Positions 330 through 63,902 of a stretch of 64,000 bases of DNA are shown here, in pieces. A model generated the notes under the pieces. It made no database searches. It was given only the letters and a program-made list of their open reading frames with translations, and was not told where the DNA came from. Position 1 is the first letter of the stretch. Each line of letters starts with the position of its first letter. This DNA is from Podarcis muralis (Eukaryota): contig NC_135661.1 in assembly GCF_964188315.1 (NCBI RefSeq), forward strand, positions 81,778,001 to 81,842,000. Reading direction: 5' to 3'. The translations under genes and the position numbers were made by a program.

Positions 330-377
330 TTATCTCTTTATCTCTTCGTAGACGGAAGGGCTTCTGGGCTGCAAGGT
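330..377 (-). CDS. Gene A exon 7 (cyt3) TLQPRSPSVYEEIKR*
   Basis: Acceptor TTTTCTCTTTAG|; completes the ITAM; TAA at 332-330. Confidence 0.85.
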   Translation of the reverse strand, partial: TLQPRSPSVYEEIKR

Positions 378-3300
378 CTAAAGAGAAAATGGAGATGGTC
401 AGGTGGAAGCCACAGAGTCAAATCCATCTTTGCTTTCATTTGTTTTCCTGGCCAGCGTAAGAATACATTTATATTCTTGGAATGGGACGCGGGTGGCGCT
501 GTGGGTTAAACCACAGAGCCTAGGACTTGCCAATCAGAAGGTCGGAAGTTCGAATCCCCGTGACGGGGTGAGCTCCCGTTGCTCGGTCCCTGCTCCTGGC
601 AACCTAGCAGTTCGAAAGCATGTCAAAGTGCAAGTAGATAAATAGATACCACTCCGGCGGGAAGGTAAACGGCGTTTCCGTGCACTGCTCTGGTTGCAAG
701 AAGCGGCTTAGTCATGCTGGCCACATGACCCGGAAGCTGTATGCAGGCTCCCTCGGCCAATATGAGGGAGATGAGTGCCGCAACCCCAGAGTCGGCCGCG
801 ACTGGACTTAATGGTCAGGGGTCCCTTTTTATTCTTGGAAGCAGCACAACTTGTAAGAAGAGAAGGAAATCAGAGCAAGTATCTTGAAGGCTTAAGGTCT
901 ATACTTTCAGGGAACTTGGGCGTCCTCTGCCTGGAATTTGGATAATTAGGAATACAGGGCATGCCACTGTGAATTTAACGCGAAGGAAGGATTTCAGGTC
1001 CAGTTCCCGAAGGGCTTCTTTTGCAGTGTGAGCAGAGAAAAGCTTCATTTGCTGAAACACCCATTTCCACCTGACTCTACAACCCTTCAGGAGACTTGCA
1101 CACCTTTGCATCTGGCCATCTAGGTGTATACATTTCTGTTCTGGAGGGAGAAATCCCTGCTTGAAATCTGGGAGAGCAGCTACCATTCAATGTAGGCTTT
1201 ACTCGGCTTGAGAGATTAAAGGGGTGACTTGGTATTCGGCCACTTTCTGTGTTCTGTTGGGTAGGTACATGAGGAAGACAATTGCCCATCAGGCCCTAAA
1301 ATGTACGAGGCCATCTTAAGGCCAGCTTTCTGAGTTGTGTCTGTAACCCTGGGTGTGAGAGCCGCTGGTCGGCTCTTGTTAATACAGTGGTACCTTGGTT
1401 CTCAAACCAAAGTCTGTTCCCAAACCAAAGCGTTCCAAAACAAAGGCACGCTTTCCCATAGTAAGTAATGCAAAATGGATTAAGACATTCCAGACTTTAC
1501 AAACAACCCCATTAAACAACAATTTAACATGAATTTTACTATCTAACGAGACCATTGATCCATAAAATGAAAGCAATGAACAATGCACTACAGTCACATA
1601 ATCAGTAGCTGAACTGTGTTCCACAGTCACCAAAACAAAACAAAAGAGCCGCAAAATTAAAAACGCAAAATAAATAGTAAAAACAGACAGACCTCAGCAT
1701 AACACTCAAAACGGAAGTGTGGCACTCAAATCAGAAGTGTAACACTCAAAACGGAGCATATTTGGCTTCCGAAAAACATTCGTAAACCAGAACACTTACT
1801 TCTGGGTTTGCAGTGTTTGGGTTCCAACTTGCTTGAGTACCAAGGCGTTTGAGAACCAAGGCACCACTGTAACAGATATTTTGTCATATTTGGCATTTCC
1901 AAACATTCTGAAGCACAAAGGACTCACCTCATATGTGTTGGCAGCGCTGGAGGAATTTTCAGGATGAACCTGGGTCAACGACAAAAATATGTTGAAGGTA
2001 GCACTTTACTGTAGCCCTGATGCCGAGTTCTTGCAGTGTGTCAGTGCAGAATTCTGAGAATTCTATTTTGATTATTATGGCCAGTTTCAAATCTGTGGCC
2101 AGCTGAACTTGGCCAGTTCCATTTTCTTAAGACCCACATTTAGGGGCACCTTAGCAGACGCTGAAACAGGGAGTGTTTTTCTGAAAACAAAAAGTTCTGT
2201 TTTTTGTTTTGTTTTTTAAACCCACTTTTCTTTCGCATCTTTGTGACTTAATTTGTCATTCCTTTCTGTGCTCCGCTGTTTAAATCCTCTGGATCATGGA
2301 AATGGCACCGCTCATCTGCTCTCAAGGTCAGCTAAGTTAGCACTGAAGCAAAAAATAAATGTTAAACAGCATGCAAAAGCGGGAAAAGCTTGAGGGTGCC
2401 TCTTAACCCACAATACTTAGTACTCTAAATAGGTCAAATCATGTTTTTTCACATGGCCAGAGACCTGGTGCCAAATTCAACTGCAGTCACTAATAATAAT
2501 AATAATAAACCGCTCATCTGCTCTCAAGGTCAGCTAAGTTAGCACTGACGTAAAAAATAAATGTTAAACAGCATGCTATTGTGGGCAATAGGGTTTTTTT
2601 TTTTTAAAAAAAACTTATTGAATTTCCCCTGAAAAGAGGAAACCCAGCTCAAAGGGGTCTGGGGTGGAGATGGCATGGCATTTAGATGCTGTTGGTGGCT
2701 GGTGGATGCCATGCTTGAGGTGGCCCCATCTCACCCCAAACGACCATCTGGAGGCCCCCTGAGTCACTCACCTGTCCAGCTGGAAGAACGTTCTCATATA
2801 TTTGAGGGGTGGATACAACCTGGGTGGAAGTTTTGCCATTTCGACGACAGACACCTGGAGGAGGGAGAAGTCTGGGAATAAACTCGTAATGTGGACCTCA
2901 TATCCTACAACAGACCTTACAAATCTACCCCCGAGAGCAGGGTAGCATCAAGCAAACTGCAGCAAGACCATTTCTTGATGCTTTTTAAGAAGCATTTGTT
3001 TGAGTCTTGTCGTTAGCAAGAAGGAGAACTGAAGGTTATTGATATTGATTGATTGCGTCCTATCCCACCCTGTTCTCCAAGGAGCTCAGGGTGGTCCACA
3101 CAGTTCTGCTGCTCTGCATTTCAGCCTCACAACAACCCTGTGAGGTAGGTTAGGCTGAGAAGCAACAACTGTTCCAAGGTCCTTTGTGGCCAAGTGGGGA
3201 TTCAAACCCTGGTCTCCAGGTTCCCAGTATGACACTCTATCCATGACACCGTTTCTTACACCAGTGTGCTGTAGTGGTTAAGAGTGGTGGACTCGTAATC

Positions 3301-5170
3301 TGGTGAACCGGGTTTGCTTCCCCGCTCCTCCGCATGCAGCTGCTGGGTGACCTTGGGCCAGTCACACTTCTCTGAAGTCTCTCAGCCTCACTCACCTCAC
3401 AGAGTGTTTGTTGTGGGGGAGGAAGGGAAAAGGAGATTGTTAGCCGCTTTGAGACTCCTTCGGGTAGTGATAAAGCGGGATATCAAATCCAAACTCTTCT
3501 TACACAGGCACACATGCTAGTCCCCCAACAGCTTACAGCCTAAAGGAGGTGACTCATTTAAATGTCAGTGCACTATGCCAATCATTTGGGGTTCCTTTTC
3601 CAGTCAGCAGAGTCACCCAGAAAGTCTTCTTGGAGTTCAGCTCATGTGTTGGTGAATTCCCACGTGGGAATAAACACCTCACCCATTTCACTTCAGCTTA
3701 TTGCAGAATTAAAATTGCAATTTATAAAACTATTGGTCTAAGGGAAATAAAGTAAAACTATATACAGCGAATCATCTCTCCTCTCTTCACTAGAGTGTGT
3801 GAGTTGGGACCATTGGTGTAGTAGGAGATTAGCAGCTCAACTTAACGATGCTAGTTGGCATGAGAAGGGGTTAAGACCACAGAGCTGTATTCCTGATAGG
3901 CAGACCATAGAGATGTACTTGGGAGAGAGGGCTCTGTGTGATTTCATTTCCCCACCTCCCCACCCCTCTTCCTTCAACCAGCAATGAGGGCTCCGCTTGC
4001 TCCAGCTCGTACACATGTCTGAGGCTGTTTTTACTGTAAATATAAGTATTTTACCTGCATAGTTTGTTTACTGCTGCTGTTGCAGAGAACCGATGCATGA
4101 CTATAGGTAAGTAAATCATATTTTAAACTTACTTCCAAGTCTGTTGCCTGATTCTTTGTCAAGAAAGGTAAGCAAGGGGGACACAGCTTACGTTGTAGCT
4201 GGGCTTTATCCAAAGAAGGCTTCACAATTCTTATGCTTTAATTTTCTGCTAAGGATGGGATCTTAAACTCTGTTCAGCTTGTGCAAGTGGGTGCCTGGAG
4301 GTAAGGTAAAGGTAAAGGGACCCCTGACCATTAGGTCCAGTCGCGGATGACTCTGGGGTTGCAGTGCTCATCTCGCTTTATTGGCCGAGGGAGCCGGCGT
4401 AAAGGTTCCGGGTCATGTGGCCAGCATGACTAAGCCGCTTCTGGCGAACCAGAGCAGCGCACGGAAACGCTGTTTACCTTCCCGCCGGAGCGGTACCTAT
4501 TTATCTATTTGCACTTTGATGTGCTTGTGAACTGCTATGTTGGCAGGAGCAGGGACCGAGCAACGGGAGCTCATCCTGTTGCGGGGATTCGAACTGCCAC
4601 CCTTCAGATTGGCAAGCCCTAGGCTCTGTGGTTTAACCCACAGCGCCACCCGCGTCCCTGCCTGGAGGTATAAATTGCAATTCATATATCCTCTCCTAAC
4701 TAGTAAAACTCATCCCACAGTTGATAGCACCATGTTGAGAGCATCCTGCAGTCCACGGCCAGCTCTGGTTTTACTCACGGAGAAAGATGTAAGTCAGTGT
4801 TCCCACTAGCACCAATATCACAGCCAGGGACCCGATAACAGTCCCAGCGAGGACTCCAGCAGAACCAGAAGAGGAAGAAGAAGAACCATCTGAAGAATCT
4901 GAAGAGCAAAGGACTTTTTATCCAAGATTTTGCATTAAATGTTGACCATAATCTAGCCTCTCATCTCTCCCTCTAAAAGCACTAAAGGAAGGAAAGTCAA
5001 TATTTTAGAATTACCCGGCTTTGGGGGCAGAGAGGCAGCAGCATGTAATGTCCAGAAATGGATGCAGCTCTTCCTGGCTCACATAAGGTTGGCTAGAAAA
5101 TAAGCCAAGGTGTTGCTCTCCAAAAGGTGAGAAATAGTTCTTCCCCAAACTCAGTGCCCAGTCTAGTGAT

Positions 5171-5229
<59 letters not shown>

Positions 5230-8200
5230 GAATGTTTTTTATTAAAGATTTTCTTGGTTTATGAAAGAACATGCATTGTCTCTTTTTTCACGTTGTAGAG
5301 TCTTTTTTATCACCTGATGTGAGACACTGGTGCTGCACAAAACCCAACATACACCCTACATATTACCACCCAACCCCCTCTCCCCACCTCCTTCTTCCCC
5401 AGTCTAGCGATATTCTTTGATCCTTCCAGCTCCACCAAGCTTTTCTCCCACACTCAGCTATGTGGGCCGCATAACAAGCTATTGTTACGATAGGCCCTTT
5501 GAGCATTGAAAACAGCTGTCCCATACGTGTCAACATTTCTCTGATGAAACATCGTAATCTACCTCCACACATAAAGCGATAGGGAGTTAGAAACCACTAG
5601 CGTGGAGAGCAGAGTCAGGAGGAAAGGTGTTCCTGGTTTATTAGTGGATTACTCACATGCCATAGTTATCTTACTGGGGTTGCTTGTAGCATTACTGACA
5701 GGGTTGACTGCCTGACACATATAGATCCCTTCATCCTCTTTGGCGATGCCAGTTAACATGAGGGTTCGGTTCCAGTCAGAAAGCCCAGTATTAGATGGGA
5801 CAGGATTACCATCCTTGAACCAAAGGATGGAGACGTCAAAGTGGTCAGAGGTGTTGCAGTGTAAGGTGACAGTTGTGTTCTCTGCCACTAGGGATTCTGT
5901 CGGCCGCAGGACCGGGTTGGAGAGGATTTCTGCAGACAAAACAGAAAGACAGTCATCATTTGTGTGTCCTCATGGTCACTGAATCTGGTTATAGTCTCTT
6001 TAAGAGAAGCCATCAAAGAAAGCCACTTTGAGCCACTGACATGTGTTGTTGTTGTTGTTTAGTCGTTTAGTTTTGTCCGACTCTTCGTGACCCCATGGAC
6101 CAGAGCACGCCAGGCACTCCTGTTTTCCACTGCCTCCTGCAGTTTGGTCAAACTCATGCTGGTCGCTTCGAGAACACTGTCCAACCATCTCATCCTCTGT
6201 CGTCCCCTTCTCCTTGTGCCCTCCATCTTTCCCAGCATCAGGGTCTTTTCCAGGGAGTCTTCTCTTCTCATGAGGTGGCCAAAGTATTGGCGCCTCAGCT
6301 TCAGGATCTGTCCTTCCAGTGAGCACTCAGGGCTGTTTTCCTTCAGAATGGATAGGTTTGATCTTCTTGCAGTCCATGGGACTCTCAAGAGTCTCCTCCA
6401 ACACCATATGTTGGTGCATATTAATTGGTTTAAAAATGCTTTTAAATGAATATAATTCCCCCTCCCCCCAAAAAACCCCTCAAACATTTCCCCATTGAAA
6501 AGCTAAAAAGGCAGTTGCAAGACTAGCATATTCTGATATAGTTTTCTGGTGAAAAAATGAATAATTTTGTAGGGCCTCATTCTTGGGGCAGAGGAATTGT
6601 GTTTAGGACAAATTAATGAGCCCCCCCACCAAGGGGGAAGGCACAGAACTCTCCACCTCAGAGCTCAGCAGAGGAGATAGATTTGGGTGCATAAGAAGTA
6701 AGAATGACTGGAGAGCAAGTTAACATACCTGAAACGGTGATGTTTGTATCCCCTGTGTTGGTAACCCCAGGACCTTCTGGTTTAAATGTATAGATTCCAG
6801 AGTCATCTGGCTTTAAATCTGTGATGTAAAGGGAGCAATCTGGCTTCACAGTTTCCCTGCCAGTGTAGGCAGGTCCCCCGATCTGACCACTATATGGAGG
6901 TCTGAAAAATGAAATAATTATGTTTCTTTCTTCAACTGCCCCTCTGTACCATTTGCAGCTGCCAACATTCTTCAGATCAAGACCTTCTGGTGTTAAGGTG
7001 ACACTATCTCCTTCTTTCAGCACTTCTGGAACAACTCTGATACTTATTCCAGTTGTCTCCTGGGCTCGAGTCAACAGGAAGCAGGAACTCAGGACGGAGG
7101 CTGCAGTGTGGAGAAGGAAACGAAAGACATGTTCTGCTAAAGAAGAAGAAAAAAGGCTTCCAACCTCTGCTGAAATGTCACGGCACACTCTAAATATCCC
7201 AGTTCCTAACAGTGTTTCCGCCCAAGAGCTGTCCTGCAAACACCAAGTGTAGCCCTTACTTTATTGAGCAAGCAAGAAGGCAGTTCTTTTCCTGGCAGCT
7301 CAGCCTCAGCCTTCTTCCGGGGCAGACATGAAGAAAGGGGAAGCGCTCTTGCATTTCCCCTTCCAGGACCCTCCCATGTTTCTAGCTAAGCAAACATTAA
7401 CATAAAGGGGTCCAGTGAAGGAGGTCTGGGCATCTGTCTGTGTTTACCTCCTTCAGGGACTGAGGATGATTCCTTTCTTTTCTTTATAATTTTTCATTTT
7501 TAACAAATGAACATAATAATCTGATTTATAAATCCTTTATGTGCTTTCACCATACCACAAATACACATGCCAGCCAAATGTATTATCATGACATTCCAAG
7601 TCTTTAATATGTGGATTCTTCAGTGACAACCATTCCTTCAACCAGCACAGACAGGAAGCTTCATAATATAATCTCATATCCGACAGGGAGAAACCTCTTC
7701 TCTCTTTCTCATCTATCAATATTTTATATTTTACTCTTGGTTTTTTCCCTTTTTTCCCTTGCCAGGTACCTTTTCGCCATTTATTTCAATAATTTCAATC
7801 TGTCTTGCCGGTATTGATTGAAACAAAAATAACATTCATTTTAATAAATGATTCCTTTCTTCACACAAAGTGCTCACTGGGCACTAAGAATCCTTCTACG
7901 ATTTTTCTTTTTAAAAAAATTCCCCCAGGGATCCAGCCTGCTCCTTAAGTACTACCTCTCTACCTCCTCCAGAGCTGCTTGTCTAGAAGGGTCTGAGGCA
8001 TTGTCAAAGTCATCATGTAACCATACCCTCCAACATTTCTCCAATGAATATGGGGACATCCAAAGGAAAAGCAGGATATGCCAGGCTCAAATCAGAAACT
8101 GGCTTCTGTAAATCGGAGACTGTATCTGGAAAACAGGGACACCTGGAGGGTCTATATGTAACTCCATCTGCAGTCTTTCAGAACACTTACCAGAAACCCC

Positions 8201-9218
8201 TGTGGAAATGGGGGCCTGATTCTGCGTCCAAGTAGGCAGGAAACAGAGGGTGAAGAGGTGCGGCCCTTAGTGGGACTTGCCAATTTTGCATTTCAATGCA
8301 AGTTTAAGTACATATTTAAAATGCATTTTCTTGCAAATTAACACAATGGTCTAGTTTGAATTCCTGAGAAGGACACCACAACATGGAGGAGCATGAAATC
8401 TGGTAGTGAGTGAGGTTTAGACCTCTGCATTAGTCTGAGAGCTGCAGATCTATATTAGAACTAAAAGACCAAATTCCTCCAGCATCCCCATCCTACCCCC
8501 CAAGCTCAGCTGCATGTAACTCCAACTGCTTCCCTCCAGTGCTCTTACCAGCAACCCCTTTGGAAATGGGGTCCGGAGTCTGCATCCTAGTAAGTAGGAA
8601 ACCAAGGGTGTAACAGGGTGGTCCCTAGCATATAAATACATGTTTTAAAAGTTATTTTCATTCAAAACAACACCTTCCTCTAATTTGAATTCTTGAGAAC
8701 TGCACCACAACATTTGGAGAAGTATGAAATCGGGTGCAGAGTTAGGTTTCGACATCTGCATTAGTGGGAGAGATACTGTTGTTTAGTCATTTAGTCGTGC
8801 CCGACTCTTCGTTACCCCATGGACCAGGGCATGCCAGGCACTCCTGTCTTCCACTGCCTCCCGCAGTTTGGTCAAACTCATGCTGGTAGCTTCGAGAACA
8901 CTGTCCAACCATCTCGTCCTCTGTTGTCCCCTTCTCCATGTGCCCTCCATCTTTCCCAACATCAGGGTCTTTTCCAGGGAGTCTTCTCTTCTCTTAAGGG
9001 GATGGCCAAAGTATTGGAGCCTCAGCTTCACGTTCTGTCCTTCCAGTGAGCACTCAGGCTGGGAGAGATACATATCTGTGCTAAAAGACCAAATTCCTCC
9101 AGCATCCTCAACTCCCCCCAAGTAAGTCCTCCCCATTGCAGGGTGCTGATCTCTCACCTGCTAAGGGCAGCATCTTCCAGGAGACCTTCCAGCCATGGGA
9201 TCTGCGTGGCCTGTCCAT
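330..9218 (-). CDS. Gene A: CEACAM-like ITAM receptor, 7 exons (L-N-A-TM-cyt1-cyt2-cyt3), 332 aa
   Basis: Exons 9158-9218, 6729-7100, 5657-5929, 4779-4898, 2772-2854, 1928-1969, 330-377; all GT-AG, phases 1,1,1,1,0,0; 999 nt open frame ending TAA. CEACAM hallmarks: leader split as MLPLA|ASVLSSCF, IgV without B-F disulfide, IgC with LSDWNRTL and CQAVNPVS. Confidence 0.88.
484..829 (+). mobile_element. Sauria (Squam1) SINE, present only in duplicate copy 1
   Basis: GGGACGCGGGTGGCGCTGTGGGTTAAACC head; TSD ATTCTTGGAA; empty site in copy 2 (~11720). Confidence 0.9.
1385..1869. mobile_element. TcMar/Tigger-like MITE (duplicate at 12483-12933)
   Basis: TA|CAGTGGTACCTTGGTTCTC...GAGAACCAAGGCACCACTG|TA. 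Confidence 0.85.
1928..1969 (-). CDS. Gene A exon 6 (cyt2) VHPENSSSAANTYE
   Basis: Acceptor GACCCAG|, donor GAG|GTGAGT; 42 nt, phase 0-0. Confidence 0.85.
2772..2854 (-). CDS. Gene A exon 5 (cyt1) RVCRRNGKTSTQVVSTPQIYENVLPAGQ
   Basis: Acceptor CCTCCTCCAG|, donor CAG|GTGAGT; basic stop-transfer residues; 83 nt. Confidence 0.87.
3260..3500 (+). mobile_element. tRNA-derived SINE (Squam2-like); duplicate at ~14620-14850
   Basis: TGTAGTGGTTAAGAG A-box head, GCTGGGTGACCTTGGGCCAGTCAC core, (CTT)n tail. Family name tentative. Confidence 0.75.
4300..4658 (-). mobile_element. Sauria SINE (duplicate at ~15673-16026)
   Basis: Full head and (ACCTTT)n tail; TSD TGCCTGGAG. Confidence 0.9.
4779..4898 (-). 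CDS. Gene A exon 4 (Ser-rich stalk + TM)
   Basis: Acceptor CTCTTCAG|AT, donor C|GTGAGT, 120 nt; YSSDGSSSSSSGSAGVLAGTVIGSLAVILVLVGTLTYIFL. Confidence 0.9.
5170..5230. repeat. (TTTC)n microsatellite (longer paralog at ~16540-16620)
   Basis: Direct reading. Confidence 0.95.
5657..5929 (-). CDS. Gene A exon 3 (IgC, A-type domain)
   Basis: Acceptor TCTGCAG|AA, donor T|GTGAGT, 273 nt; VTLHC...LWFKDG...EDEGIYMC. Confidence 0.93.
6043..6405 (-). mobile_element. Bov-B LINE 3' fragment (shared with duplicate at ~17375-17730)
   Basis: WCWRRLLRVPWTARRSNLSIL...HGVTKSR; (CAA)n tail. Confidence 0.9.
6729..7100 (-). CDS. Gene A exon 2 (signal end + IgV N domain)
   Basis: Acceptor CACACTGCAG|CC, donor CAG|GTATG, 372 nt; ...CKWYRG...YTGRETVKPDCSLYITDLKPDDSGIYT. 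Confidence 0.93.
8778..9060 (-). mobile_element. Bov-B LINE 3' fragment (shared with duplicate at ~20122-20405)
   Basis: ECSLEGQ.LKLRLQYFGH...REDSLEKTLMLGK. Confidence 0.88.
9158..9218 (-). CDS. Gene A exon 1 (leader) MDRPRRSHGWKVSWKMLPLA
   Basis: Strong Kozak ACAAGATGG; 61 nt; donor GCAG|GTGAGA, phase 1. Confidence 0.85.
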
Positions 9219-11563: not shown

Positions 11564-11611
11564 TTATCTCTTTATCTCTTCGTAGACAGAAGGGCTTCTG
11601 GGCTGCAAGGT
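11564..11611 (-). CDS. Gene B exon 7 (cyt3) TLQPRSPSVYEEIKR*
   Basis: Same acceptor and stop as gene A exon 7. Confidence 0.85.
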   Translation of the reverse strand, partial: TLQPRSPSVYEEIKR

Positions 11612-14600
11612 CTAAAGAGAAAATGGAGATGGTCAGGTGGAAGCCACAGAGTCAGATCCATCTTTGCTTTTATTTGTCTTCCTGGCCAGTGTAAGAATAC
11701 ATTTATTTACGTATTTATATTCTTTGAAGCAGCACGGCTTGTAAGAAGAAAAGGAAATCAGAGTAAGTGTCTTTAAGACAAGTGGTTTATACTTTCAGGG
11801 AACCTGGGCATCCTCTGCCTGGAATTTGGATAATTCGGAATACAGGGCATGCCACTGTGATTTCAATGCGAAGGAGGAATTTCAGGTCCAGTTCCCTCAG
11901 GGCTTCTTTTGCAGTGTGAGCAGAGAAAAGCTTCACTTGCTGAAACACCCATTTCCACCTGACTCTACAACATAGCTGTCAACCTTCCCCCACCCCTTTT
12001 TTGCGGGAAATTCCCTTATTCCAGCACTGTTTCTCGCTGCTTCCTGCTGCTATCCCAGAATGTTAGATATCCCGTAGACTGTCCCTGGAACAATTGACGC
12101 TGCTGATCCCTTATTTTCGAGGCTGCTGATCCCTTCTTTTCAAATCTGAAAGTTGACAGCTATGCTCTACAACCCTTCAGGAGACTTGCACACCTTTGCA
12201 GCTGGCCATCTAGGTGTACATACATTTCTGTTCTGGAGGGAGAGATCCATGCTTGAAATCTGGGAGAGCAGCTGCCATTCAATGTAGGCTTTACTCGGCT
12301 TGATAGACTAAAGGGGGTGTCTTGGTATTCGGCCACTTTCTATGTTCTGTTGGGTAGGTACATGAGGAAGACAATTGCCCATAAGGCCCTAAAATGTACA
12401 AGGCCATCTTAAGGCCAGCTTTCTGAGTTGTGTCTGTAACCCTGGGTTAATTGTGAGAGCTGCTGGTCGGCTCTTGTTAATACAGTGGTACATTGGTTCT
12501 CAAACTTAATCCATTTCGGAAATCTGTTCCCAAACCAAAGCATTCCAAAACCAAGGCATGCAAAATGGATTAAGACGTTCCAGACTTTTAAAAACAACCC
12601 CCTTAAACAGCAATTTAACATGAATTTTACTATCTAATGAGACCATTGATCCATAAAATGAAAGCAATGAACAATGCACTGCAGTCACATCATCAATCAA
12701 TCAGTAGCTGAACTGCATTCCACAGTCACAAAAAGAAAACAAAAGAGCTGCAAAATCCAAAACGCAAAATAAATAGCAAAAACTAACAAATGTCAGCGTA
12801 ACACTCAAAATGGAAGTGTGGCACTCAAATTAGAAGTGTAACACTCAAAACGGAGCATATTACTTCTGGGTTTGCAGTGTTTGGGTTCCAAGTTGCTTGA
12901 GTACCAAGGTGTTTGAGAACCAAGGGACCACTGTAACAGATATTTTGTCATATTTGGCATTTCCAAACATTCTGAAGCACAAAGGACTCACCTCATATGT
13001 GTTGACAGCGCTGGAGGAATTTTCAGGATGAACCTGGGTCAACGACAAAAATATGTTAACCTGCCCTTTCCATTCACATGGTTTGCTGCAAGAGAAAGGA
13101 AAATTTCCCAGCTTCATGGGAAAGGAAGATTTTAAGTGGCCGCAGATCAGTAGTGGGTGGAGCCAGATGTAAAAATGGGTGGAGCGAGAAATGCAAATTT
13201 CACCTTTGTGCAGTAGGCTAGTTTCTACACAGCTCCCTCTCTACACCTTCATCCAAGCAAGGCTGAGACTTTCAAAGACATATTCCAGCCAGGCAAAACA
13301 CTCAGGCAAGGTGTGAAGCCAGTTTGGTGGTGGACCTGACCTGAGAAGGAGTGTGTCGTGTGGAAAGACTGAGCGACAGGCAAAGTGATATTTAACCCCC
13401 AGAACTCAGTTTTCCTACTCCTTGTCTACCAGGTAAGTGCTTTAAAATTGAGAGGATCGGCTCCATTCTATACCCATATTGGCAATAAACAACAGCATAA
13501 GAAAAGTAGTTTGATGGCAGCCTTCCTCGCAAGGTTATCATCTTTCTTCCAACAGAGCCTGGTTATAATTGACCCTCCGTTAGAAGGAAGAGGATTGGTT
13601 TGAGAAGATATTGAATTATTTGAGTAGGTTTGAACAATTTGGGGCAATTAAAATGTTAAAAGTTAAATAAACCTTGTGGAGGGAGGAGTGTTAAGGTATA
13701 TAGAATTGTACATATGGCTGATTTGAATATGTTATTATTGATTATTTATACCCAATGCATCAGCCGCCTGGGGGTTTCCACTGTGTTTTGGTTGTTGGTA
13801 AAAACCCCCACAAAAAACTGAAAATTAAAATAAAATAAAATAATTGACCCTCCGTTAATGCTCCTGGCGGAGAACTGAAGTCTGCCAGAGTTTGAAAGTT
13901 CTTCACAGTTCAGGAGGAGAAAGAAAGATGAAATATTTCTACATCAGATACCAATTTCCAATCATACCATCCCCAAATGTGTTGGAGGTTAAACAGGTCC
14001 ATAAACAGGTTGATTGTGGGCAAGAGGGGTTTTGTTTTTTTTAACTTATTGAATTTCCCCTGAAAAGAGGAAACCCAGCTCAAAGGGGTGTGGGGTGGAG
14101 ATGGCATGGCATTTAGATGCTGTTGGTGGGTGCTATGCTTGAGGTGGCCCCATCTCACCCCAAACGACCACCTGGAGGCCCCCTGAGTCACTCACCTGTC
14201 CAGTTGGAAGAACGTTCTCATATATTTGAGGGGTGGATACAACCTGGGTGGAAGTTTTGCCATTTCGACGACAGACACCTGGAGGAGGGAGAAGTCTGGG
14301 AATAAACTCGTAATGTGGACCTCATATCCTACAACAGACCCTACAAATCTGCCCCCGAGAGCAGGGTAACATCAAGCAAACTGCAGCAAAAGCATTTCTT
14401 TATGCCTTTTAAGAAGCATTTGTTTGAATCTTGTCCTTAACAAGAACGAGCTCAGGGTGGTCTACGCAGTTCTGCTGCTCTGCATTTCAGCCTCACAACA
14501 ACCCTGTGAGGTAGGTTAGACTGAGAAGCAACAACTGTTCCAAGGTCCTTTGTGGCCAGTTGGGGATTCAAACCCTGGTCTCCAGGTTCCCAGTATGACA

Positions 14601-16539: not shown

Positions 16540-16618
<79 letters not shown>

Positions 16619-23010: not shown

Positions 23011-23118
23011 TCTTCTTCATTGCAAGTGTTTTTAAAATCCTGCTAATATTTTCAATTGTTTACATTGGTGGGCTCCTCTGTCACCATGTTACATCTTCTC
23101 TACGCAGACTTTGTCTCT

Positions 23119-41267: not shown

Positions 41268-41339
41268 CTGTGGCATGTGTGAAGAAAGACGATCCTTTCA
41301 ACATGCGACCCCTTTCCAAGCAATAACAATAGATGCTAA

Positions 41340-43007: not shown

Positions 43008-43119
43008 ATGTTCAAGCTCTTCCCATCTCCAAGAGGGGCGGGAACATCATGTGGACAGTGCCCAAAAGGTGGTGCTTCCTGTGGCCATGGGAGATCCTGG
43101 GCCCTGGTGATTCTAGCAG
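43008..43119 (+). CDS. Gene D exon 1 (37-aa leader) MFKLFPSPRG...GRSWALVILA
   Basis: Donor GCAG|GTGAGA, phase 1; same length as and alignable to the gene E leader. Confidence 0.75.
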
Positions 43120-49100: not shown

Positions 49101-50299
49101 CACTGCTTTTCTACAATGTGTATATATCAGGCAAAATCCCATAGCTCAGTCAGTAGAGCATGTGTCTCTTAATCTTAGGGTTGTGGGTTCGAGTCCCAGG
49201 TTGGGTGAAAGATTCCTGCATTTCAAGGGGTTGGACTAGTTGACCCCCATGGTCTCTTCCAGCTCTGCAAATCTGTGATTCTGTGAATTTCTGTACGAAA
49301 TGTCTGTATTAGGAGAAAGTCGCTGATGAATTCTCATGAGGATTTAAAAATGAACAAATCACAAACTGATATGGAAATATGGGGGGGGGGGGGTGAGAAA
49401 CTGGGAGAAAGCCCAATTGCTCGTGCACTTGCATTCTCATGGGTTGTCTCCACATGAGAAACCACCAGCTTTCTGGCTTTCAAAGAGGTTTAGACAAATT
49501 CATGGAGGTTATCAATGGCTACCAGCCATCATGGCTCTCCTCTGTCTTCATGGTCAGAGGCACCAATGATTCTGAATACCAGTTTCCAGAAACCACAGGA
49601 GGGGAGAGTTGCTCTTGTGCTCGGATCCTGCTCGTGGGTTTCCCACAGGCATCTGGGTGTGAGAAAAGGATGGTGGACTAGATGAGCCATTGGCCTCATC
49701 CAGCAGCCTCCTTGGACGTTCCCGTGTCCTGAAGATGTATCTCATCAACCCACCAATGTTGAATAGACCCTGGGGAGGGGAGTTGAATGACAACGGTAGC
49801 ATCTCACGCCAAAACATTGAATGAGGTGTCCCCAGAAGGCAAATTAAGCACCAGAGAGGCTCAGTGAACAGGAGAAAACAGAGCCCCAGTCAAATAAGGG
49901 ACATGGAAGTTTTCTAAAGAAGCGTCCATCTTTGACACAATGGAGAAGCGCCAAACTTCTCCCTCCTAAACTCTTTGATCCTTTTCCCTGTTTCTTTAGC
50001 GATGACTCGGACCCCACCGTGGTAACCATCATGCCTTCTACAGGACGGTAAGTAGCAAACCTACAGGGTGGAGCCTGAAATCTCTCTTTTTGGAGAAAAC
50101 CAGATTTTTGTCTCCAAAAACCGCAAACTACATAAGTTAAGATGTCTTCTAAAAGTTAAGAACGACATAACTTTTAGAAGACATCTGAAGGCAGCCCTGT
50201 ATCAGGACTTTTTAAAATGTTTGATGCTTTATTATGTTTTATATATTCTGATAGCTGCCCAGAATGGCTGGGGAAACCCAGCTAGATCGGCGGGGTATA

Positions 50300-50356
<57 letters not shown>

Positions 50357-53300
50357 TTATTATTTGTACCCTGCCCATCTGGCTGGGTTTCCCCAGCCAC
50401 TCTGGGCGGCTTCCACAAAGACCAAAAATGCACTAAGATGTCACACATTAAAAACTTCCCTGAACAGGGCTGCCTTAAGATGTCTTCTAAATGTCAGGTA
50501 GTTGTTTATCGCTTTGACATCTGGTGGGAGGGCATTCCACAGGGCGGGCGCCACTACCGAGAAGGCCCTCTGCCTGGTTCCCTGTAGCTTTGCTTCTCGC
50601 AGTGAGGGAACCGCCAGAAGGCCCTCGGTGCTGGACCTCAGCATCCAGACAGAACAATGGGGGTGGAGACGCTCCTTCAGGTATGATTAAACAACATCGG
50701 CCAGGAGGCAGAGAGGGAGGGCAGGCTTCTGGAATTCCATTTCCACCTTTGGGGACAAAGTGGTTTGGGGTGGGGGTGGGGCCCAGTTATTCAAATGGAA
50801 ACAGATGTTGCACAAAATTTGTACAGTGGTACCCCGCAAGACGAACGCCTCGCAAGACAGAAAACCCGCTAGACGAAAGGGTTTTCCATTTTGGAGGCGC
50901 TTCGCAAAACAAATTTCCCTATTGGCTTGCTTCGCAAGACGAAAGCCCATAGGGAAATCTCCGGGACAGCAGGGAAGCGCAGCGCGTCTTCCCCACTGTC
51001 CTTGGACCTCCTCCCACCGCCCGGCTTCGGAACGAAGCTCCGAAGCCAGACGGCGGGGCGGGAACGCCTCCTCCCGCCGCCCGGCATCGGAACGAAGCTC
51101 CGATGCTGGGCAGCGGGGCGAGAACGCCTCCTCCCGCCGCCTGGCATTGGAACGAAGCTCCGAAGCCGGGCGGTGGGGCGGGGACACCTTCTCCCGCCGC
51201 CCGGCTTCGGATGGCTTTCCTGAAGACTTGGGGTGGGAGGAGGGTTTTCCTTCCCACCGCCAACATTCAGAATGCTGTTCTGAATGTTGGCGGTGGGGAG
51301 GAAAAACCCTCCTCCCACGCAAGCCCCGGGAACAGAGGGAAAGCGCTGCGTGCCTTCCCCTCTGTTCCCGTACCTGTCCTGAAGGCTTGCGGTGGGGAGA
51401 AAAGCCCTTCTCCGCACCGCCAGCCTGGCAAGCGGTTTCCCTAGGAACGCATTAATTGATTTTCAATGCATTCCTATGGGAAACCGTGCTTTGCAAGACG
51501 AAAAACTCGCAAGAAGAAAAAAGTTGCGGAACGAATTAATTTCATCTTGCGAGGCACCCCTGTATTGTTATTGGGGAAGGGATGTTCCCTCAGCCATAAT
51601 ATGACCCTGAAATTGCAGGTATGCAGAGCAGAAAACTGAATATGACTTCAACAGTCAGTCGTGGTCTTTCTCACTGTGATTTATATCATTCATTCATTCA
51701 TTCATTGCCCTTAACCCTAAGGTCCCAGGGCAGGTTAGAACATGAAAACATTTAAAATGGTTTAAAACAACTTACAGTTACAGAAATCAGATGGGTCCTA
51801 AAAATATACACTGTCTGCAGATTTTATTTTATTTTAAAACCATGCACATACAATTCCTCCCATATGTTCAAAATGCCCCTCAACAGTTTAAAACTGTTGC
51901 AAAACTTCTCCATGGATGTCAAAGAAGGGAAGCTGGCGCTTGTGGGAGGCAGCTGAGAGCTTCCAGAAATAAACTTCTCACACGTGAATTCTTTGCTGTT
52001 TTTCCTCTTTCCTCAGTTCTATGGGAAGCAACAGACCTTCTCACGCAAGGTAAATCACAGGCCTTTAGGATATAGCCCAGATCCTGTTTTTGGAAGAAGA
52101 CCAGCTTTGGTGGGCTGGAGTGGTCTCAGAGCTCCGGGACTCCATGTCCACCTTTGGGGGTTAAATGAGGGTCCAATGATTCAGTGAACACAAATTGGGG
52201 GGACCCATGGAGGGTCCCTCAGCCAGAGAACGAACATGGCCTCTCCAGTTTTCCTGTGGGAAATGATTCTGTTCTTGTTTAAAATTGAGCTTGCCTAATG
52301 TGAACTGAAGCACAGTTAGCCTTCAAAATCCACATTTCCCTAAATGTTGCCATGCAGTTCTCCAGGCAAAAAAATATGTCCAGAAATGCATATACTAAAA
52401 TGTGCATATAAATGCATGTTTGTGAAAGCAACCCTACCAAAAATGATTGGTTTATTTTATTGGGGGAGGGGGTGTTGATTAGACAAAAGTACGTTAAAAA
52501 ATGGGTTCATTATGAGAAATTCGCACTCAAAAGATGGGAAAACAAGGAATTTAGAGAACCAAAATTGGCTCCAAGTGGGAAAATCAAAATTGGAAACAGA
52601 GTTGTTAGATCCAAAAATCAAGAATTTGTCAAGAATGTATAACTTGCTGTTGAAATGGAATACTCAGGATGAAACGGTGAAATCTGCCATGATTAAATGG
52701 GCACAAGATGTTGGACATAACATAATGATGGCTGACTGGGAACAGTTATGGACCACCGGTATGAAATTCACGGCATGTAATGCCTTAAGAGAGAATATTA
52801 TGAAAATGATTTATAGGTGGTACATGACACCAGTCAAGCTTGAAAAAATTTACCATTTGCCCGACAATAAATGTTGGAAATGTAAGGAGACTGAAGGTAC
52901 ATTATTTCACCTTTGGTGGACATGCCCAAGGATTAAGACATTCTGGGAGATGATTTATAATGAAATGAAAAAGGTATTTAAATATACCTTTCTGAAGAAA
53001 CCAGAGGCCTTTCTCCTGGGCATGGTCAGCCAATTGGTGCCAAAGAAGGATAGGACCTTTTTTATGTATGCAACAACAGCAGCAAGAATACTCATTGCGA
53101 AGTATTGGCAGACACAAGATTTACCCACCCGGGAAGAATGGCAGATGAAGTTGATGGACTATATGGAACTGGCGGAAATGACTGGCAGAATCTGAGACCA
53201 GGGAGAAGAGTCGGTGGAAGAAGACTGGGAAAAGTTTAAAGACTATTTACAGAAATACTGTAAAATTAATGAATGTTAGAAGAATGTTGGAATGAAGTTA

Positions 53301-54135
53301 TATGGCTTTAGTAGAAATGTTATAAGGAATTAAGTATAAATAGATTAATAGAATATTAAAGGAAAAAATAAGGTTAGAATGTGTTAAGATAATTATAGGA
53401 TAGAAAAGAGAGGAAGATGGAAAGGAATTGCTGAAACAATGAACAGAAGTGGAATACAAAAAGGGAGGTGTGAGGAGGTCGTGGAAATAAGTGAATGAAA
53501 GATAAGATATTGAAATTGTTTTATGTGTTTTAAACTGTTTTTGTTTCGTTTGTTAGTTTAATGTGTTAGTGTTATGTAGTGTCTCTGTATTGTATTGTTC
53601 TTTTTTGTAGTGTTTAAATTGTTGGAAAAGTAATAAATATTATTTAAAAAAAAAAGAACCAAAATTGGCAAAATTGGCAATCTGTACTTTTCTTGGTTCT
53701 GGTAAAGATTGACACCAGGCAGGTGCCTATCACTGTCCCCTAAGCCTAAGGCATGTACTCTTTACCTGTTCAAAGCATTTTTGTTTAGGCAAGCCTATCC
53801 ACGTGTGTAGGATGCTGACATGTCCTTTAATCAGGTTCTTAGCTGTATCCTGGGGGGCGGCATTGGGGAGAGGAGCTGGAAAAGTGGGGAGATGATTCTG
53901 GTCCTGTTTTGGGAACTCTGAGTCCCAAGCCCACCTCTGAGATTCTATTTGTTTCCTTAGGATGGAGAATCAGCTGATATTAAGCAGCCGACCTGGGTAA
54001 GTACCGGTGGGAGGAAAATAAGATTTGTGGGGCCCACATGTGGGTAATTAAAAAGAGAATCGGAAAATAGTGCCATCCTTTTTTTCCAGTTTCAGACCCC
54101 AACTTGGCCTGTCTCATGGTTCTGATTCCTCCTAA
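43008..54135 (+). CDS. Gene D: single-IgV CEACAM-like receptor L-N-TM-cyt, ~260 aa
   Basis: Exons 43008-43119, 46970-47338, 48132-48270 are well supported; candidate tail exons 50000-50047, 52017-52049, 53961-53996, 54090-54135 all chain in phase 2 (783 nt total). The 3' end is uncertain and an N gap follows the TM exon. Confidence 0.72.
43288..43770 (-). mobile_element. Bov-B LINE 3' fragment
   Basis: ORF 43295-43756 is Bov-B RT C-terminus. Confidence 0.92.
44290..44610 (+). mobile_element. Bov-B LINE 3' fragment with internal deletion
   Basis: KAMTNLDSILKSRDITLPTKVR joined directly to EGTRRRG; CAACAAC tail. Confidence 0.85.
45770..46165 (-). mobile_element. L1-clade LINE 3' fragment
   Basis: DYMGLAEMTGRIRDQGKETGEEDWKKYKDYL. 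Confidence 0.8.
46970..47338 (+). CDS. Gene D exon 2 (IgV N domain)
   Basis: Acceptor CACCTCTAG|GT, donor CAG|GTAAGG; 369 nt; HILSSCFLLTQA...SCLWTKG...YDGRQ...DCSMHIRNVTFDDIGLY. Confidence 0.92.
47391..47723 (-). mobile_element. Sauria SINE
   Basis: Consensus body and tail. Confidence 0.88.
47725..48015 (+). mobile_element. CR1 LINE 3' fragment
   Basis: GGGGGTTGGACTGGAT...GGTCCCTCCCA tail. Confidence 0.75.
48132..48270 (+). CDS. Gene D exon 3 (stalk + TM) ...SLTSGAIAGLAFGCIVGAILLGVMLITLLTLL
   Basis: Acceptor TCTCCACAG|, donor AG|GTGATG (phase 2); GAIAG TM start typical of CEACAM1-like proteins. Confidence 0.87.
48323..48842. other. Assembly gap (N), directly after gene D TM exon
   Basis: 520 N. 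Confidence 1.
49137..49286 (+). mobile_element. SINE with tRNA-Lys-like head and CR1-type tail (Squam3-like)
   Basis: TAGCTCAGTCAGTAGAGCA...CTCTTAA...GGTTCGAGTCC, then GGGTTGGACTAG...GATTCTGTGA. Family name tentative. Confidence 0.72.
50000..50047 (+). CDS. Gene D candidate cytoplasmic micro-exon SDDSDPTVVTIMPSTG
   Basis: TTTCTTTAG| ... CG|GTAAGT; open only in phase 2, matching the TM exon. Confidence 0.6.
50160..50690 (-). mobile_element. L2-like LINE 3' ends (related copies at ~24590-24900 and ~46490-46720)
   Basis: QGTRQRAFSVVAPALWNALP...TFRRHLKAALF; (TAA)n tail. Confidence 0.78.
50824..51562. mobile_element. TcMar-like non-autonomous element with internal 60-bp hairpin repeats
   Basis: TA|CAGTGGTACCCCGCAAGA...TCTTGCGAGGCACCCCTG|TA. 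Confidence 0.82.
51008..51211. repeat. 60-bp GC-rich minisatellite, ~3.4 units, each a hairpin
   Basis: Exact 60-bp period; unit CCGCCCGGCTTCGGA-ACGAAGC-TCCGAAGCCGGGCGG. Confidence 0.9.
52017..52049 (+). CDS. Gene D candidate cytoplasmic micro-exon RSMGSNRPSHA
   Basis: Long polypyrimidine tract TTTCCTCAG| ... AAG|GTAAAT; 33 nt. Confidence 0.55.
52480..53650 (+). mobile_element. L1-clade LINE 3' end (ORF2 CCHC knuckle + 3'UTR + polyA)
   Basis: CWKCKETEGTLFHLWWTCP; A-rich tail at ~53645. Confidence 0.88.
53961..53996 (+). CDS. Gene D candidate cytoplasmic micro-exon RMENQLILSSRP
   Basis: TTTCCTTAG| ... TGG|GTAAGT; 36 nt. Confidence 0.55.
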
Positions 54136-55592: not shown

Positions 55593-55633
<41 letters not shown>

Positions 55634-60717: not shown

Positions 60718-60829
60718 ATGCCCGTAAACCTCCCACCTGAAAGAACAACACGGACATCATGCAGACACCATTCTATAGCTTGGGGCCCCTCCAGATGTGC
60801 AAGATCCTGCCTGGTTCTGCTTCTAGCGG
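60718..60829 (+). CDS. Gene E exon 1 (37-aa leader)
   Basis: CCAGGATG context as in gene D; 112 nt; phase-1 donor. Confidence 0.78.
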
Positions 60830-63800
60830 GTAAGAGATTTTTTTTTGGGGGGGGGTTGTCTCTGGGGAACAGAGATCCTGGCTTGATGATGGTCTGGGGA
60901 GAAGAGACCCAGAAGGACTGAGATCTATTTATTTTAAAAAATACATTTATCTATAGCATGTGGCCAGCATGACTAAGCCGCTTCTGGTGAACCAGAGCAG
61001 TGCACGGAAATGCCGTTTACCTTCCCGCTGGAGCTGTACCTATTTATCTACTTGCACTTTGATGTGCTTTCGAACTGCTAGGTTGGCAGGAGCAGGGACC
61101 GAGCAATGGGAGCTCACCCTGTTGCGGGGATTCGAACCGCCTACCTTCTGATCGGCAAGTCCTATGCTCTGTGGTTTAACCCACAGCGCCACCCACATCC
61201 CTTAGCTATAGCTATAGCTATATAATATTCTTTTACAAAATTGTACACACATAGATCCTAAACATAACAGGACTAACAAAATATGGGTTACTGGGTCGGG
61301 ACCTAAAATACCAACTGTCTTGTTTTACAGTACAGTCATACCTTGGTTCTTGAAAGGAATCCATTCCGGAAGTCCATTCGACTTCCGAAAACGTTCAAAA
61401 ACCAAGGCGCAGCTTCTGATTGGCTGCAGACGTTTGGCTTCCAAAAAATGTTCGCAAACCGGAACACTCTCTTCCGGGTTTGCGGCGTTCGGGAGCCAAA
61501 ACATTCGAGTCATAAGGCGTTTGAGAATCAAGGTACGACTGTACATACGTAATAATGAGATAATTACCGTAAACCTGTAAAATGAGTTCTTCAGCAGTTC
61601 AGCTTAGAAAACACAGAGTAATAGGAGGGAGCGAATGAGTAGTTCCTGCTTATCTATGCCATATTGAAATATAGGTTGCAGGTATTTCTCGTCTCTCTGT
61701 TGCTTTGTTTGTATATTTAATAAAATCACAACACACTGTGTAGACGTATCTGGTTTTTTCTCTCTCCACCATGGCACCTTTTCCCCCAAACAGCTTTTCC
61801 ATTACAGCTGCTTGCCAGACTATATTATACCAGGGCTCAATATTCATTAACGGCAAGGTTTTCCCCATTTCTGGCTATTGCCATTCTAGTTGCTTTCAAT
61901 AAATGTGTTATTAATTCCTTCCTTCTTAATTGGTCCATATCTGTAGTAATGAAGTAAGACTGTTACTGGGGTTATTGGGATTGTCTGAGCTACAATCTCT
62001 TTTAAAATTTCATTCCAAAATTGTTCCATTTGTGGACAGCTCCACCACATAAGTTGGTGTATAGACCTATAATTTGGCATCCATAGATGCCTCAGTGTTA
62101 AATACTATCCATTCACAATTTTTAATAAGCATTCCCTGGTAGTTGCTGACAAATATTTATATGGTGCTTTTGTCCATAAATTGCTCAATTTATCCTCTTC
62201 AATGCTTATATCTCAATTTAATTCACACCAGCTTTTTAGATTTTGCTGGGAGCAAAATGGGTTCACGAAAAGGGTTTCGTATAAAAGGGAATTTCATCCC
62301 TTAGCCATTATACGATCTCTTGTCAGCTTCTTTTCATATTCTGCTAATTTCCTTGTAGCTTCATTTTTCATTTGTGCATTTAGAAGAAATGATCTCAACC
62401 AATATCCTAACAGTGAAGTACAGCTGAGATCTAATACTGAGAGAGAAGCTGTTTTATAAGTTCTACGGCCACCTCAGTATAAAAAGCCATGCCTCCCAAA
62501 TTCTGAGATTACAATCGTATATTTTTAAAATATAAAGTTGATCGAAAATCCCCCTTTATTTGTTCTCAGGGGTGTAAGCTGGGAAGCCCCTCTTGGTTGT
62601 AAAATTGCAGGGTATGGTCTGAAGGCAGGTGGGGCCACCACTAACTTGCTGAGGCCTAGTAGGTTTCAGTCTGGTCAGTGGCTGAATTGTTGACCACCTG
62701 AGAGCCTCATGTATGGCACTTTGGGTGCCATGACAGAAGAAAGGCAGGATTTAAATATAGGAGAAAGAATAAATGAAATTACGAGGGTTTCTGTCTCCAT
62801 TACTTCTGCCTGTTCTTGGCCTGTTGAACGGAGTGACTTTCTCCTCCCCATTCCACAGCCTCCATCTTGAGCTCTTGCTTCCTGTTGACTCAAGCTGCCA
62901 GAAGGGTTAAAGCTCGGCGTCCTCATGTGAAGAAAATGGCCGCTCCTAAGCCTCCTCGTTTGCCTCAGGAGGCTGCCACGACGAATGCTTCTGTTCTTCC
63001 TCCAGCAACAACCGGGGCTCCCCCCGCGACAGCAGCTGCAGCTGCTGAAACAACCACAGGGACTCTCCCTGCAATGACAAAGGCAACAACGAACGGGACG
63101 TCTCCTGCAACGACAAACGGGACTTCTCCTGCAATGACAAACGGGACTCTCCCTGCAGTGACAAACTGGACTCTCCCTACAAGGACAACTGGGGCTCCTT
63201 CCATTCCTCCTGCAGTGCCAACTAAGACTTCTCGTCCCCGTCCTCCTCCCCGTCCCCCTGCCCCTCCACCACCTCCCCGTCCGCCCGGTCCCCCTCCCCC
63301 TCCTCCTTCAGTGACAACTAAGTCTCCCCCTCCCCCTCCTCCCCCTCTCCCTCCAGCAGTGTCAACTAAGGGTCCTCCAGCCCCTCCTCCTCCCCACCCT
63401 CCTTCCCTGAGCCCTCCTGCTGAGGGGACACCCAAGAGTCCTCCTCCTCCCAAAATCTCTCCTGCCTCTCCTGGAGCTCCCAGTAGTCCACGACCAACCG
63501 TTCCTGGTGGTCCCGGTGTTCCCACTTCGAAGCGTCCTAAGCCCGAGGATCCCATGCTACCCCCCAGAAGGGATATCATTATCAGTTTTTACCCATCGAT
63601 TCCGGTCATAGACGAGGACATCCTACTCACCTTGGATGGAGATATCAAAGGCTTTGTGGGCTGCCTTTGGAAGCGAGGGGTGGGCCCTATATCGAGGACC
63701 ATTGTGCTCTACTATACGCAGCCCAATGTCACGCTGCAATACATGTTTGGCCATACCGGTCGGGAAATTCTTAATCAGGATTGCTCTCTCCTCATCACCA

Positions 63801-63902
63801 AAATGACCTCTGAGGACACTGCTGTATATGAGGTAGAGATGGAAGTGTGGAGGAATGGGACAGAATACTCTCTCGTTGGGCGAAAATATTTGGAGGTTAC
63901 AG
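60718..63902 (+). CDS. Gene E (5' part): CEACAM-like protein with Thr/Pro-rich N-terminal insert before the IgV domain; continues beyond window
   Basis: Leader exon 60718-60829 (MPVNLPPER...RSCLVLLLA, G|GTAAGA) and 1044-nt exon 62859-63902, phase 1-1, open frame. Confidence 0.85.
60957..61202 (-). mobile_element. Sauria SINE, partial
   Basis: 5' two-thirds of consensus. Confidence 0.85.
61333..61541. mobile_element. TcMar-like MITE
   Basis: TA|CAGTCATACCTTGGTTCT...AATCAAGGTACGACTG|TA. Confidence 0.82.
61700..62460 (-). mobile_element. L1-clade LINE fragment, degenerate
   Basis: HQLMWWSCPQMEQFWNEI similarity. Confidence 0.6.
62859..63902 (+). CDS. Gene E exon 2 (signal end + Thr/Pro-rich region + IgV N domain)
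   Basis: Acceptor TTCCACAG|CC, donor CAG|GTAAC; ASILSSCFLLTQA...PPRR-DIIISF...GCLWKRG...HTGRE...DCSLLITKMTSEDTAVY. Confidence 0.92.
63085..63180 (+). repeat. 24-bp coding tandem repeat (TTNGTSPA-type, 4 units)
   Basis: ACAAACGGGACTTCTCCTGCA units in gene E exon 2. Confidence 0.85.

Follow-up and report, generated by a model that had tools for sequence, protein, structure and literature searches.

Which receptors does the wall lizard Podarcis muralis encode in a cluster of immunoglobulin-type genes, how would they signal, and does any of them differ from the CEACAM proteins already described? The stretch analysed, here called the window, comprises 64,000 nucleotides (nt) of a P. muralis chromosome (GCA_964188315.1, OZ076960.1), its position 1 corresponding to about 81,778,001. 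It contains six V-set exons, three C2-type immunoglobulin (Ig) exons and transmembrane exons, as recognised from a listing of open reading frames (ORFs), Pfam and tblastn. These exons form a cluster of five intact CEACAM-family genes, A to E, and one pseudo N exon; A, B, C and the pseudo-exon lie on the minus strand, and D and E on the plus strand. Gene structures, motifs, family membership and paralogy can be read directly from the window, which is very probably part of the P. muralis CEACAM locus, with two subfamilies arranged head to head. In a Research Square preprint of June 2026, Zimmermann and Kammerer described the wall-lizard CEACAM locus, with genes coding for immunoreceptor tyrosine-based activation and inhibition motifs (ITAM and ITIM, respectively), and placed it between TOMM40 and LIPE (PMC13278318, Figure 1). 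Inspection of the flanking regions revealed CEACAM-like genes only. A first-pass annotation had proposed five reconstructable genes and one orphan exon, and every feature that it named was found where it had been placed. The five genes are intact, but E lies only partly inside the window, and the supposed orphan is a pseudo-exon.

The N domains place the cluster in the CEACAM family. Searches with phmmer returned CEACAMs as the best Protein Data Bank (PDB) matches of the N domains of A, C, D and E, and for C, D and E all or nearly all of the PDB matches listed were CEACAMs. A profile of 11 squamate N domains, searched against the PDB, retrieved 31 CEACAM chains first (expect values 3e-17 to 6e-10), followed by contactin and SIRP-alpha, the next family being 100-fold weaker. 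No SLAM, CD2 or HEPACAM chain appeared in the top 60 of this search, and the grouping with SLAM or CD2 that the first-pass annotation had named as evidence against its assignment was therefore not seen. Membership of the SLAM, CD2 or HEPACAM families is rejected, none of these being among the top PDB matches. In the N-domain alignment, the canonical positions in strands B and F lack Cys, and Arg66 and Asp84 are invariant; a missing B–F disulfide together with an Arg/Asp pair is a described feature of CEACAM N domains (PMC4079198). Furthermore, the exon maps of A to E share a split leader, the last third of which is carried by the N exon, and the leader, Ig and transmembrane introns are in phase 1. 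Both the split leader and the phase-1 introns are stated for CEACAMs (PMC13278318). The common leader and N-exon arrangement claimed for the members is thus present in all five genes, and the family assignment agrees with the PDB matches, the leader, the intron phases, the loss of the disulfide and the ITAM tail. The N domains of A to E also contain two non-canonical cysteines, one placed two residues ahead of the C-strand Trp and the other within an E-strand D-C-S-L motif, which may form an alternative inter-sheet disulfide. At the second of these sites the ITIM-type protein P0002 has Phe.

Genes A and B carry an intrinsic ITAM, as had been proposed. The exons of A reproduce an NCBI protein (P0001, 332 residues, 'CEACAM21-like') residue for residue, and all of its introns are GT–AG, with phase 1 after the leader, N, IgC and transmembrane exons and phase 0 for both tail introns. 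A and B each encode a leader, an IgV (N) domain, an IgC2 domain, a transmembrane segment and a three-exon tail. In both tails the ITAM reads YETL-x7-YEEI and is interrupted by a phase-0 intron after Y-E, and a YENV motif lies 21 residues upstream of it. In reptiles, the ITAM tail is reported to span three exons with an endocytic tyrosine 17–21 residues upstream, and in mammals there are four tail exons (PMC13278318). This reptile decoy-type tail is found in A and B, and not in C, D or E. In the Zootoca vivipara ortholog of A and B (P0003), the transmembrane segment has Glu (..GTVIESLAV..), a buried acidic residue, where A and B have Gly.

The two genes arose as an 11.3-kb tandem duplication, about 91–11150 versus 11326–22766, with 87–96% identity across the unit and 92.6% in a 6.6-kb core. 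No other long nucleotide similarity between gene units was found in the window. Because identity reaches 98–99% in the tail exons and the sequence directly adjoining them, compared with 87–93% for introns, the signalling tail of A and B is, to judge by this comparison, under purifying selection. The ectodomains diverge at about the intron rate: the ratio of non-synonymous to synonymous substitution (dN/dS) between A and B is 0.97 in the N exon and 1.06 in the IgC exon, and the differences between the N domains fall mostly in the C to C'' and F–G stretches. The ectodomain thus appears relaxed or diversifying. Positive selection between A and B was considered and is unsupported at a dN/dS of about 1. 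The rapid diversification suggested for the cluster therefore holds in part, in that the N and IgC exons show ratios near 1, but the tail exons are far more conserved than the introns and positive selection is unproven.

A maximum-likelihood tree of 54 N domains, containing no SLAM, CD2 or HEPACAM outgroups, placed A beside P0002, a protein of P. muralis in which two ITIM-type motifs occur (IQYSTL and IIYSEI). At the protein level the N domains of A and P0002 are 89.6% identical, and they are sisters with support of 99/95. The N domain of B is 83% identical to that of P0002 and falls outside the pair, despite B being the tandem twin of A. The grouping of A with P0002 to the exclusion of B fits the gene-conversion or paired-receptor picture presented in the preprint. 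A tblastn search with the P0002 tail found no ITIM exon in the window, which agrees with the earlier remark that no ITIM partner was visible there; P0002 exists elsewhere in the genome. In the same tree, the N domain of C pairs with its Zootoca ortholog, and those of D and E group apart from it, in a clade that includes domains from Pogona, Varanus, Sceloporus, Phrynosoma and Ophiophagus, E being long-branched.

The Thr/Pro-rich N-terminal insert attributed to gene E is present, as 223 residues between leader and IgV domain. It consists of 33% Pro, 14% Thr and 13% Ala, with 21% Ser plus Thr; N-x-S/T sites occur five times, the net charge is +19, and tandem repeats of 24 and 48 nt are present. 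Following a signal-type leader and preceding the IgV domain, it has the position and composition of a mucin-like or proline-rich extracellular segment, the glycosylation of which is predicted only. The leader exon of E is followed by a phase-1 donor, GTAAGA, and is 65% identical to residues 34–70 of the ortholog P0082, a segment that in P0082 runs directly into the leader part. The transmembrane exon and four small tail exons lie 0.5–6.6 kb past the window end, and the only tyrosine of the tail belongs to a juxtamembrane SYQ.

Similar extensions between leader part and IgV domain occur in Phrynosoma P0010 (~85 residues) and in king cobra P0015 (~50 residues). An extension is also present in P0059, a protein very similar to P0015, and in P0082 (~130 residues), a full-length model with a leader, a transmembrane segment and a tyrosine-free tail. 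Because it is common to lacertid, iguanian and snake proteins, the extension is, on this distribution, older than the split between these lineages, and its length is variable. The main text of PMC13278318 does not mention an E-type low-complexity extension (the supplementary figures are outside that scope), and the words proline, mucin, lysine and DAP12 are absent from the same text. Among the features of the cluster, only the E-type cap looks undescribed. Tentatively, with the case for and against close to balanced, E can be regarded as a member of a conserved squamate CEACAM subfamily without a description in the available literature, which would combine a single IgV domain, a fast-evolving, length-variable Pro/Thr/Ser-rich extension in the N exon and a tyrosine-free tail.

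Gene C, which runs from 36679 to 23100 on the minus strand, reproduces the NCBI 'CEACAM16-like' isoforms X1 (P0166) and X2 (P0006). Its tail of 45 residues retains YENV. The ITAM is missing, as the first-pass annotation had stated. Compared with exon 7 of A, the last exon of C has a deletion of ~17 nt that removes the second ITAM tyrosine, and its reading frame differs. No remnant of exon 6 of A was detected in the following intron of C, where the best local alignment scored below shuffled controls. Because exon 6 is undetectable and the exon 7 homolog carries a deletion and is read in another frame, the ITAM of C is, on these alignments, truly lost, through decay. The transmembrane lysine reported for C is present, but it stands at the outer edge of the hydrophobic span, before ~20 hydrophobic residues, and not inside it. 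A basic residue at the same border is frequent in relatives, both ITAM-bearing (P0077 and P0123) and D-type (P0021, P0024 and P0045). Read-through of the IgC donor of C (27064–27067, minus strand) would add one residue and a stop codon and so yield a secreted N–IgC form; the P. lilfordi and Zootoca models end exactly in this way.

In the pseudo N exon, both the donor and the AG at the position homologous to the acceptor are missing, and comparison with A reveals a deletion of 19 nt; this exon had earlier been taken for an orphan exon. A U2 small nuclear RNA (snRNA) match close to it adjoins a Bov-B-like element that recurs in the window, and is probably a retrocopy that helped to destroy this gene copy. 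Evolution by birth and death with different outputs, as proposed for the cluster, fits the duplication of A and B, the ITAM decay in C and the presence of a pseudo-exon.

Gene D forms a complete frame of 246 residues with GT–AG introns throughout and no tyrosine after the IgV domain, and the description of D as single-domain with a tyrosine-free tail holds for both of its 3′ forms. It matches models named 'CEACAM3' (P0158/P0009) from the older P. muralis annotation, P. lilfordi and P. raffonei. A Pogona protein is similar to D and has a comparable tail, also free of tyrosine. In the newest NCBI model (P0155), the first exon (45569–45688) is not hydrophobic, and the intact transmembrane donor (48268–48275) beside an assembly gap is read through; the leader exon of the older model fits the family pattern, and P0155 is probably the poorer model of D. 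The stop codon of D (53996–54000) overlaps a good donor, GG|GTAAGT, and an alternative 3′ exon in the older model (~56995–57145, plus strand) adds ~50 residues, which are also tyrosine-free. An intron of D contains a weak tRNA-like match of 31.2 bits (49138–49205, plus strand), probably a tRNA-derived short interspersed element.

From these features we infer the expression pattern, ligands and signalling of the cluster. A and B would be activating, phagocytic receptors of the 'decoy' type, in which YENV could act as an endocytic or Grb2-type motif alongside the canonical ITAM. The sister relationship between the N domain of A and the ITIM-bearing CEACAM1-type N domain of the same species would constitute a paired-receptor pattern. 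The CC'C''FG face of the A and B N domains may bind a ligand shared with CEACAM1, either a microbial adhesin or another CEACAM, upon which Src-family kinases would phosphorylate the ITAM and Syk would be recruited, leading to uptake. Gene C may represent a derivative of the A/B type that lost the first ITAM exon, had its last exon truncated and reframed, and kept YENV, and a fourth minus-strand copy appears to have been reduced to the pseudo-exon; the minus-strand genes would thus be CEACAM1-related. D and E would belong to an older, squamate-wide subfamily with a single IgV domain, a transmembrane segment and short, Ser/Thr-rich, tyrosine-free tails, and presumably have adhesion or co-receptor roles with no tyrosine signalling of their own. 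In E-type proteins, the variable Pro/Thr/Ser-rich extension in front of the IgV domain is probably O-glycosylated.

Several points weigh against this reading. The splicing of all five genes rests on annotation and homology, not on reads, and a dN/dS of ~1 between A and B is no proof of positive selection. In the gene list, B is not recorded on its own; the start of B is taken by an NCBI gene whose longest product, of 1857 residues with many Ig domains, starts at the ATG of B (20564), spans B and A, and runs past the window start. This model is probably merged or a read-through, joining the 5′ end of B to a multi-IgC CEACAM1, which, judging by the length of the product, may be the 16-IgC CEACAM1 described in the preprint. 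In 13 P. muralis RNA-type runs, 12–25% of the sampled words of the gene A exon 2–4 stretch are present (exons account for 33%), but this stretch includes a high-copy retroelement, which renders the signal ambiguous. The NCBI model of E (P0008, 'uncharacterized LOC144328616') starts at an internal ATG (62936) and has no signal peptide, and five of the 13 P. muralis runs (X16, X18, X21, X23 and X24) hold 0.00 of the words of the gene E stretch. In four RNA-type runs of another organism, 16–19% of these words are present. The absence of these words from the P. muralis runs and the leaderless model, together with the very long branch of the IgV domain, a Pro-rich insert that is poor in stops in several frames and open on the opposite strand too, and the presence of one neighbouring copy that is already a pseudo-exon, raise the suspicion that some members, mainly E but possibly also B or C, are silent or decaying copies whose frames remain open by chance or youth. 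This is unlikely, given that the leader exon of E is intact, carries a good donor and is conserved in the ortholog P0082, that E also has an intact acceptor, the IgV hallmarks (Trp, the Arg/Asp pair and Tyr), and transmembrane and tail exons, that its architecture is kept in iguanian and snake proteins, and that the A and B tail exons are kept far better than their introns.

A different doubt concerns the signalling of C. Receptors coupled to FcR-gamma have a basic residue about 3–5 positions into the transmembrane segment, and C, having no ITAM, has a lysine in ..DIAKITAGVL.. followed by the hydrophobic run; after its ITAM loss, this receptor could therefore have become an adaptor-coupled activating one, pairing through the lysine at the transmembrane start with a DAP12- or FcR-gamma-like chain. 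Such coupling is unlikely, because related CEACAM-like transmembrane exons, ITAM-bearing ones included, are often basic at the same border. Moreover, the hydrophobic run after the lysine suffices to span the membrane alone, a tail with YENV is retained, and the orthologous models of P. lilfordi and Zootoca do not extend past the IgC exon. A broader challenge is that the whole cluster might serve cell–cell adhesion or homophilic regulation and not a pathogen-driven decoy function, a proposal with a minor yet appreciable chance of being correct. While the strong constraint on the ITAM and endocytic motif of A and B, the tracking of the inhibitory receptor's N domain by that of A within the species, and the selective N-exon conservation between wall-lizard CEACAM1 and CEACAM1L1 (PMC13278318) all argue for decoys, the lizard CEACAM1 dN/dS is low (0.8) with non-synonymous changes unclustered on the binding face (PMC13278318), the A–B ratio does not exceed 1, and D and E have no tyrosine motifs. 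Paired activating decoys on the minus strand, beside an older subfamily without tyrosine motifs on the plus strand, remain the preferred interpretation.

CEACAM paired receptors are a textbook example of a host–pathogen arms race, for which reptiles were the last vertebrate gap until the 2026 preprint closed it. Because that preprint covers P. muralis, the cluster as a whole adds little; the novelty originally attached to it does not stand, since NCBI already annotates A, C, D and E and the locus is described (PMC13278318). Additions that may be of use are the verified exon maps of A to E, in which the 5′ end of E is corrected and the model of D is likely better than the newest automatic one. 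C further provides a clear case of ITAM loss by exon decay beside intact paralogs, and the E-type extension, occurring in lacertid, iguanian and snake proteins, gives an IgV receptor an unusual topology. If the proposal for E is correct, its cap would lie distal to the binding domain, where it might cover the CEACAM binding face, control access to it, or serve as glycan or polyproline bait.

Table 1. Exons, assembly gaps and repeat-derived elements of the P. muralis CEACAM cluster (window positions).
Feature	Position	Strand	Basis
Gene A exon 1: start codon and initial two thirds of leader; phase-1 donor	9158..9218	-	Exact P0001 residues 1-20; GT donor
Gene A N exon: last third of leader and IgV-like N domain	6729..7100	-	Exact P0001; Pfam V-set; best PDB match CEACAM6, expect value 1.8e-10
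Gene A IgC2 (A-type) exon	5657..5929	-	Exact P0001; Pfam Ig_3/Ig_2/I-set
Gene A Ser-rich stalk and transmembrane exon	4779..4898	-	P0001 mapping
Gene A tail exon 1, with YENV	2772..2854	-	P0001 mapping
Gene A second tail exon, up to and including first ITAM Tyr-Glu; phase-0 donor	1928..1969	-	P0001 mapping
Gene A tail exon 3: second ITAM half (TL...YEEI) and stop codon	330..377	-	P0001 mapping
Gene B, paralog of A, ITAM and YENV intact	11564..20564	-	Exon-by-exon alignment to A; GT-AG check
Gene B exons (seven, all intact)	20564-20504, 18431-18063 (N), 17256-16984 (IgC), 16265-16146 (transmembrane), 14278-14196, 13033-12992, 11611-11564	-	
Gene C leader exon, isoform X1 (X2 uses 36387-36366 instead)	36616..36679	-	P0166 and P0006 mapped
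Gene C N exon	29678..30049	-	Exact P0006; best PDB match CEACAM8, expect value 4.5e-10
Gene C IgC2 exon	27067..27330	-	P0006 mapping; P. lilfordi and Zootoca ortholog models end here
Gene C transmembrane exon, Lys at outer border (..DIAKITAGVL..)	25473..25586	-	P0006/P0166 mapping
Gene C YENV-bearing tail exon, 97 nt, phase-2 donor	24205..24301	-	P0006/P0166 mapping
Gene C last exon, decayed homolog of A exon 7	23100..23130	-	Sequence comparison with A
Pseudo N exon, degenerate leader part	about 40996..41304	-	Exon comparison with A
U2 snRNA match, 86.9 bits, above gathering score; 74 nt downstream of pseudo N exon	40806-40922	-	Probable retrocopy
Gene D leader exon, 112 nt, phase 1	43008..43119	+	P0158/P0009 residues 1-37; joined reading frame
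Gene D N exon	46970..47338	+	100% identical to P0158/P0009; best PDB match CEACAM3, expect value 5e-6
Gene D transmembrane exon, intact AAG|GTGATG donor 52 nt before gap	48132..48270	+	Protein-model mapping
Gene D tail exons (50000-50047, 52017-52049, 53961-54000)	50000..54000	+	Protein-model mapping; joined frame
Gene E leader exon (phase 1, 112 nt), missing in NCBI model	60718..60829	+	Search for ATG, hydrophobic stretch and phase-1 GT donor
Gene E N exon: leader part, 223-residue insert, IgV	62859..63902	+	P0008 match; best PDB match a CEACAM1, expect value 1e-4
Assembly gap, gene C N-to-IgC intron	27638..27769	.	Gap run in sequence
Assembly gap, between gene C leader exon and pseudo-exon	39037..39166	.	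Gap run in sequence
Assembly gap, gene D transmembrane-to-tail intron, 52 nt after intact donor	48323..48842	.	Gap run
Retroelement tail copies	6059-6487, 8783-9157, 17386-17715, 20129-20503, 40225-40581, 43295-43756, 54945-55418	.	ORFs with ..RRLLRVPWTARRSNLSILKE..

All three assembly gaps are non-coding, two being intronic and one intergenic, and the exons that flank them are joined directly in protein models of this and other assemblies. A retroelement tail is present in at least seven copies, 91–95% alike, within introns of the CEACAM genes and in their flanks. These copies may have favoured gene duplications.

The closest known counterparts of A and B are the reptile CEACAM1L ITAM genes (PMC13278318), which come from the same species and locus and share the three-exon ITAM tail and upstream endocytic tyrosine. 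The preprint also reported a 16-IgC CEACAM1, N-exon similarity between CEACAM1 and CEACAM1L1 in the wall lizard, and CEACAM1/decoy pairs (PMC13278318). Its main text is silent on tyrosine-free single-domain lizard members and on the ITAM decay and border lysine of C, as it is on the Pro/Thr-rich extension. In the human CEACAM3/CEACAM1 pair, as in A, an intrinsic activation motif is combined with an N domain that is close to that of the ITIM partner and has no canonical disulfide. Unlike human CEACAM3, A and B have an additional IgC2 domain and a canonical ITAM distributed over three exons, and the lizard and human receptors likely arose independently.

Gene D resembles the proteins named 'CEACAM3' in Podarcis and 'CEACAM21-like' in Pogona (P0009, P0158 and P0021), which likewise have a single IgV domain, a transmembrane segment with ..SYQ or a related sequence at its end, and a tail that lacks tyrosine. 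These names are automatic and imply no orthology to the human genes; none of the three proteins has an ITAM. For E, a parallel in architecture is the TIM family, the members of which are type I membrane proteins that also combine an IgV domain with a Ser/Thr/Pro-rich, presumably O-glycosylated segment. The mucin stalk of TIM proteins lies between the IgV domain and the membrane, whereas the segment of E is N-terminal, distal to the IgV domain, and contains long polyproline runs.

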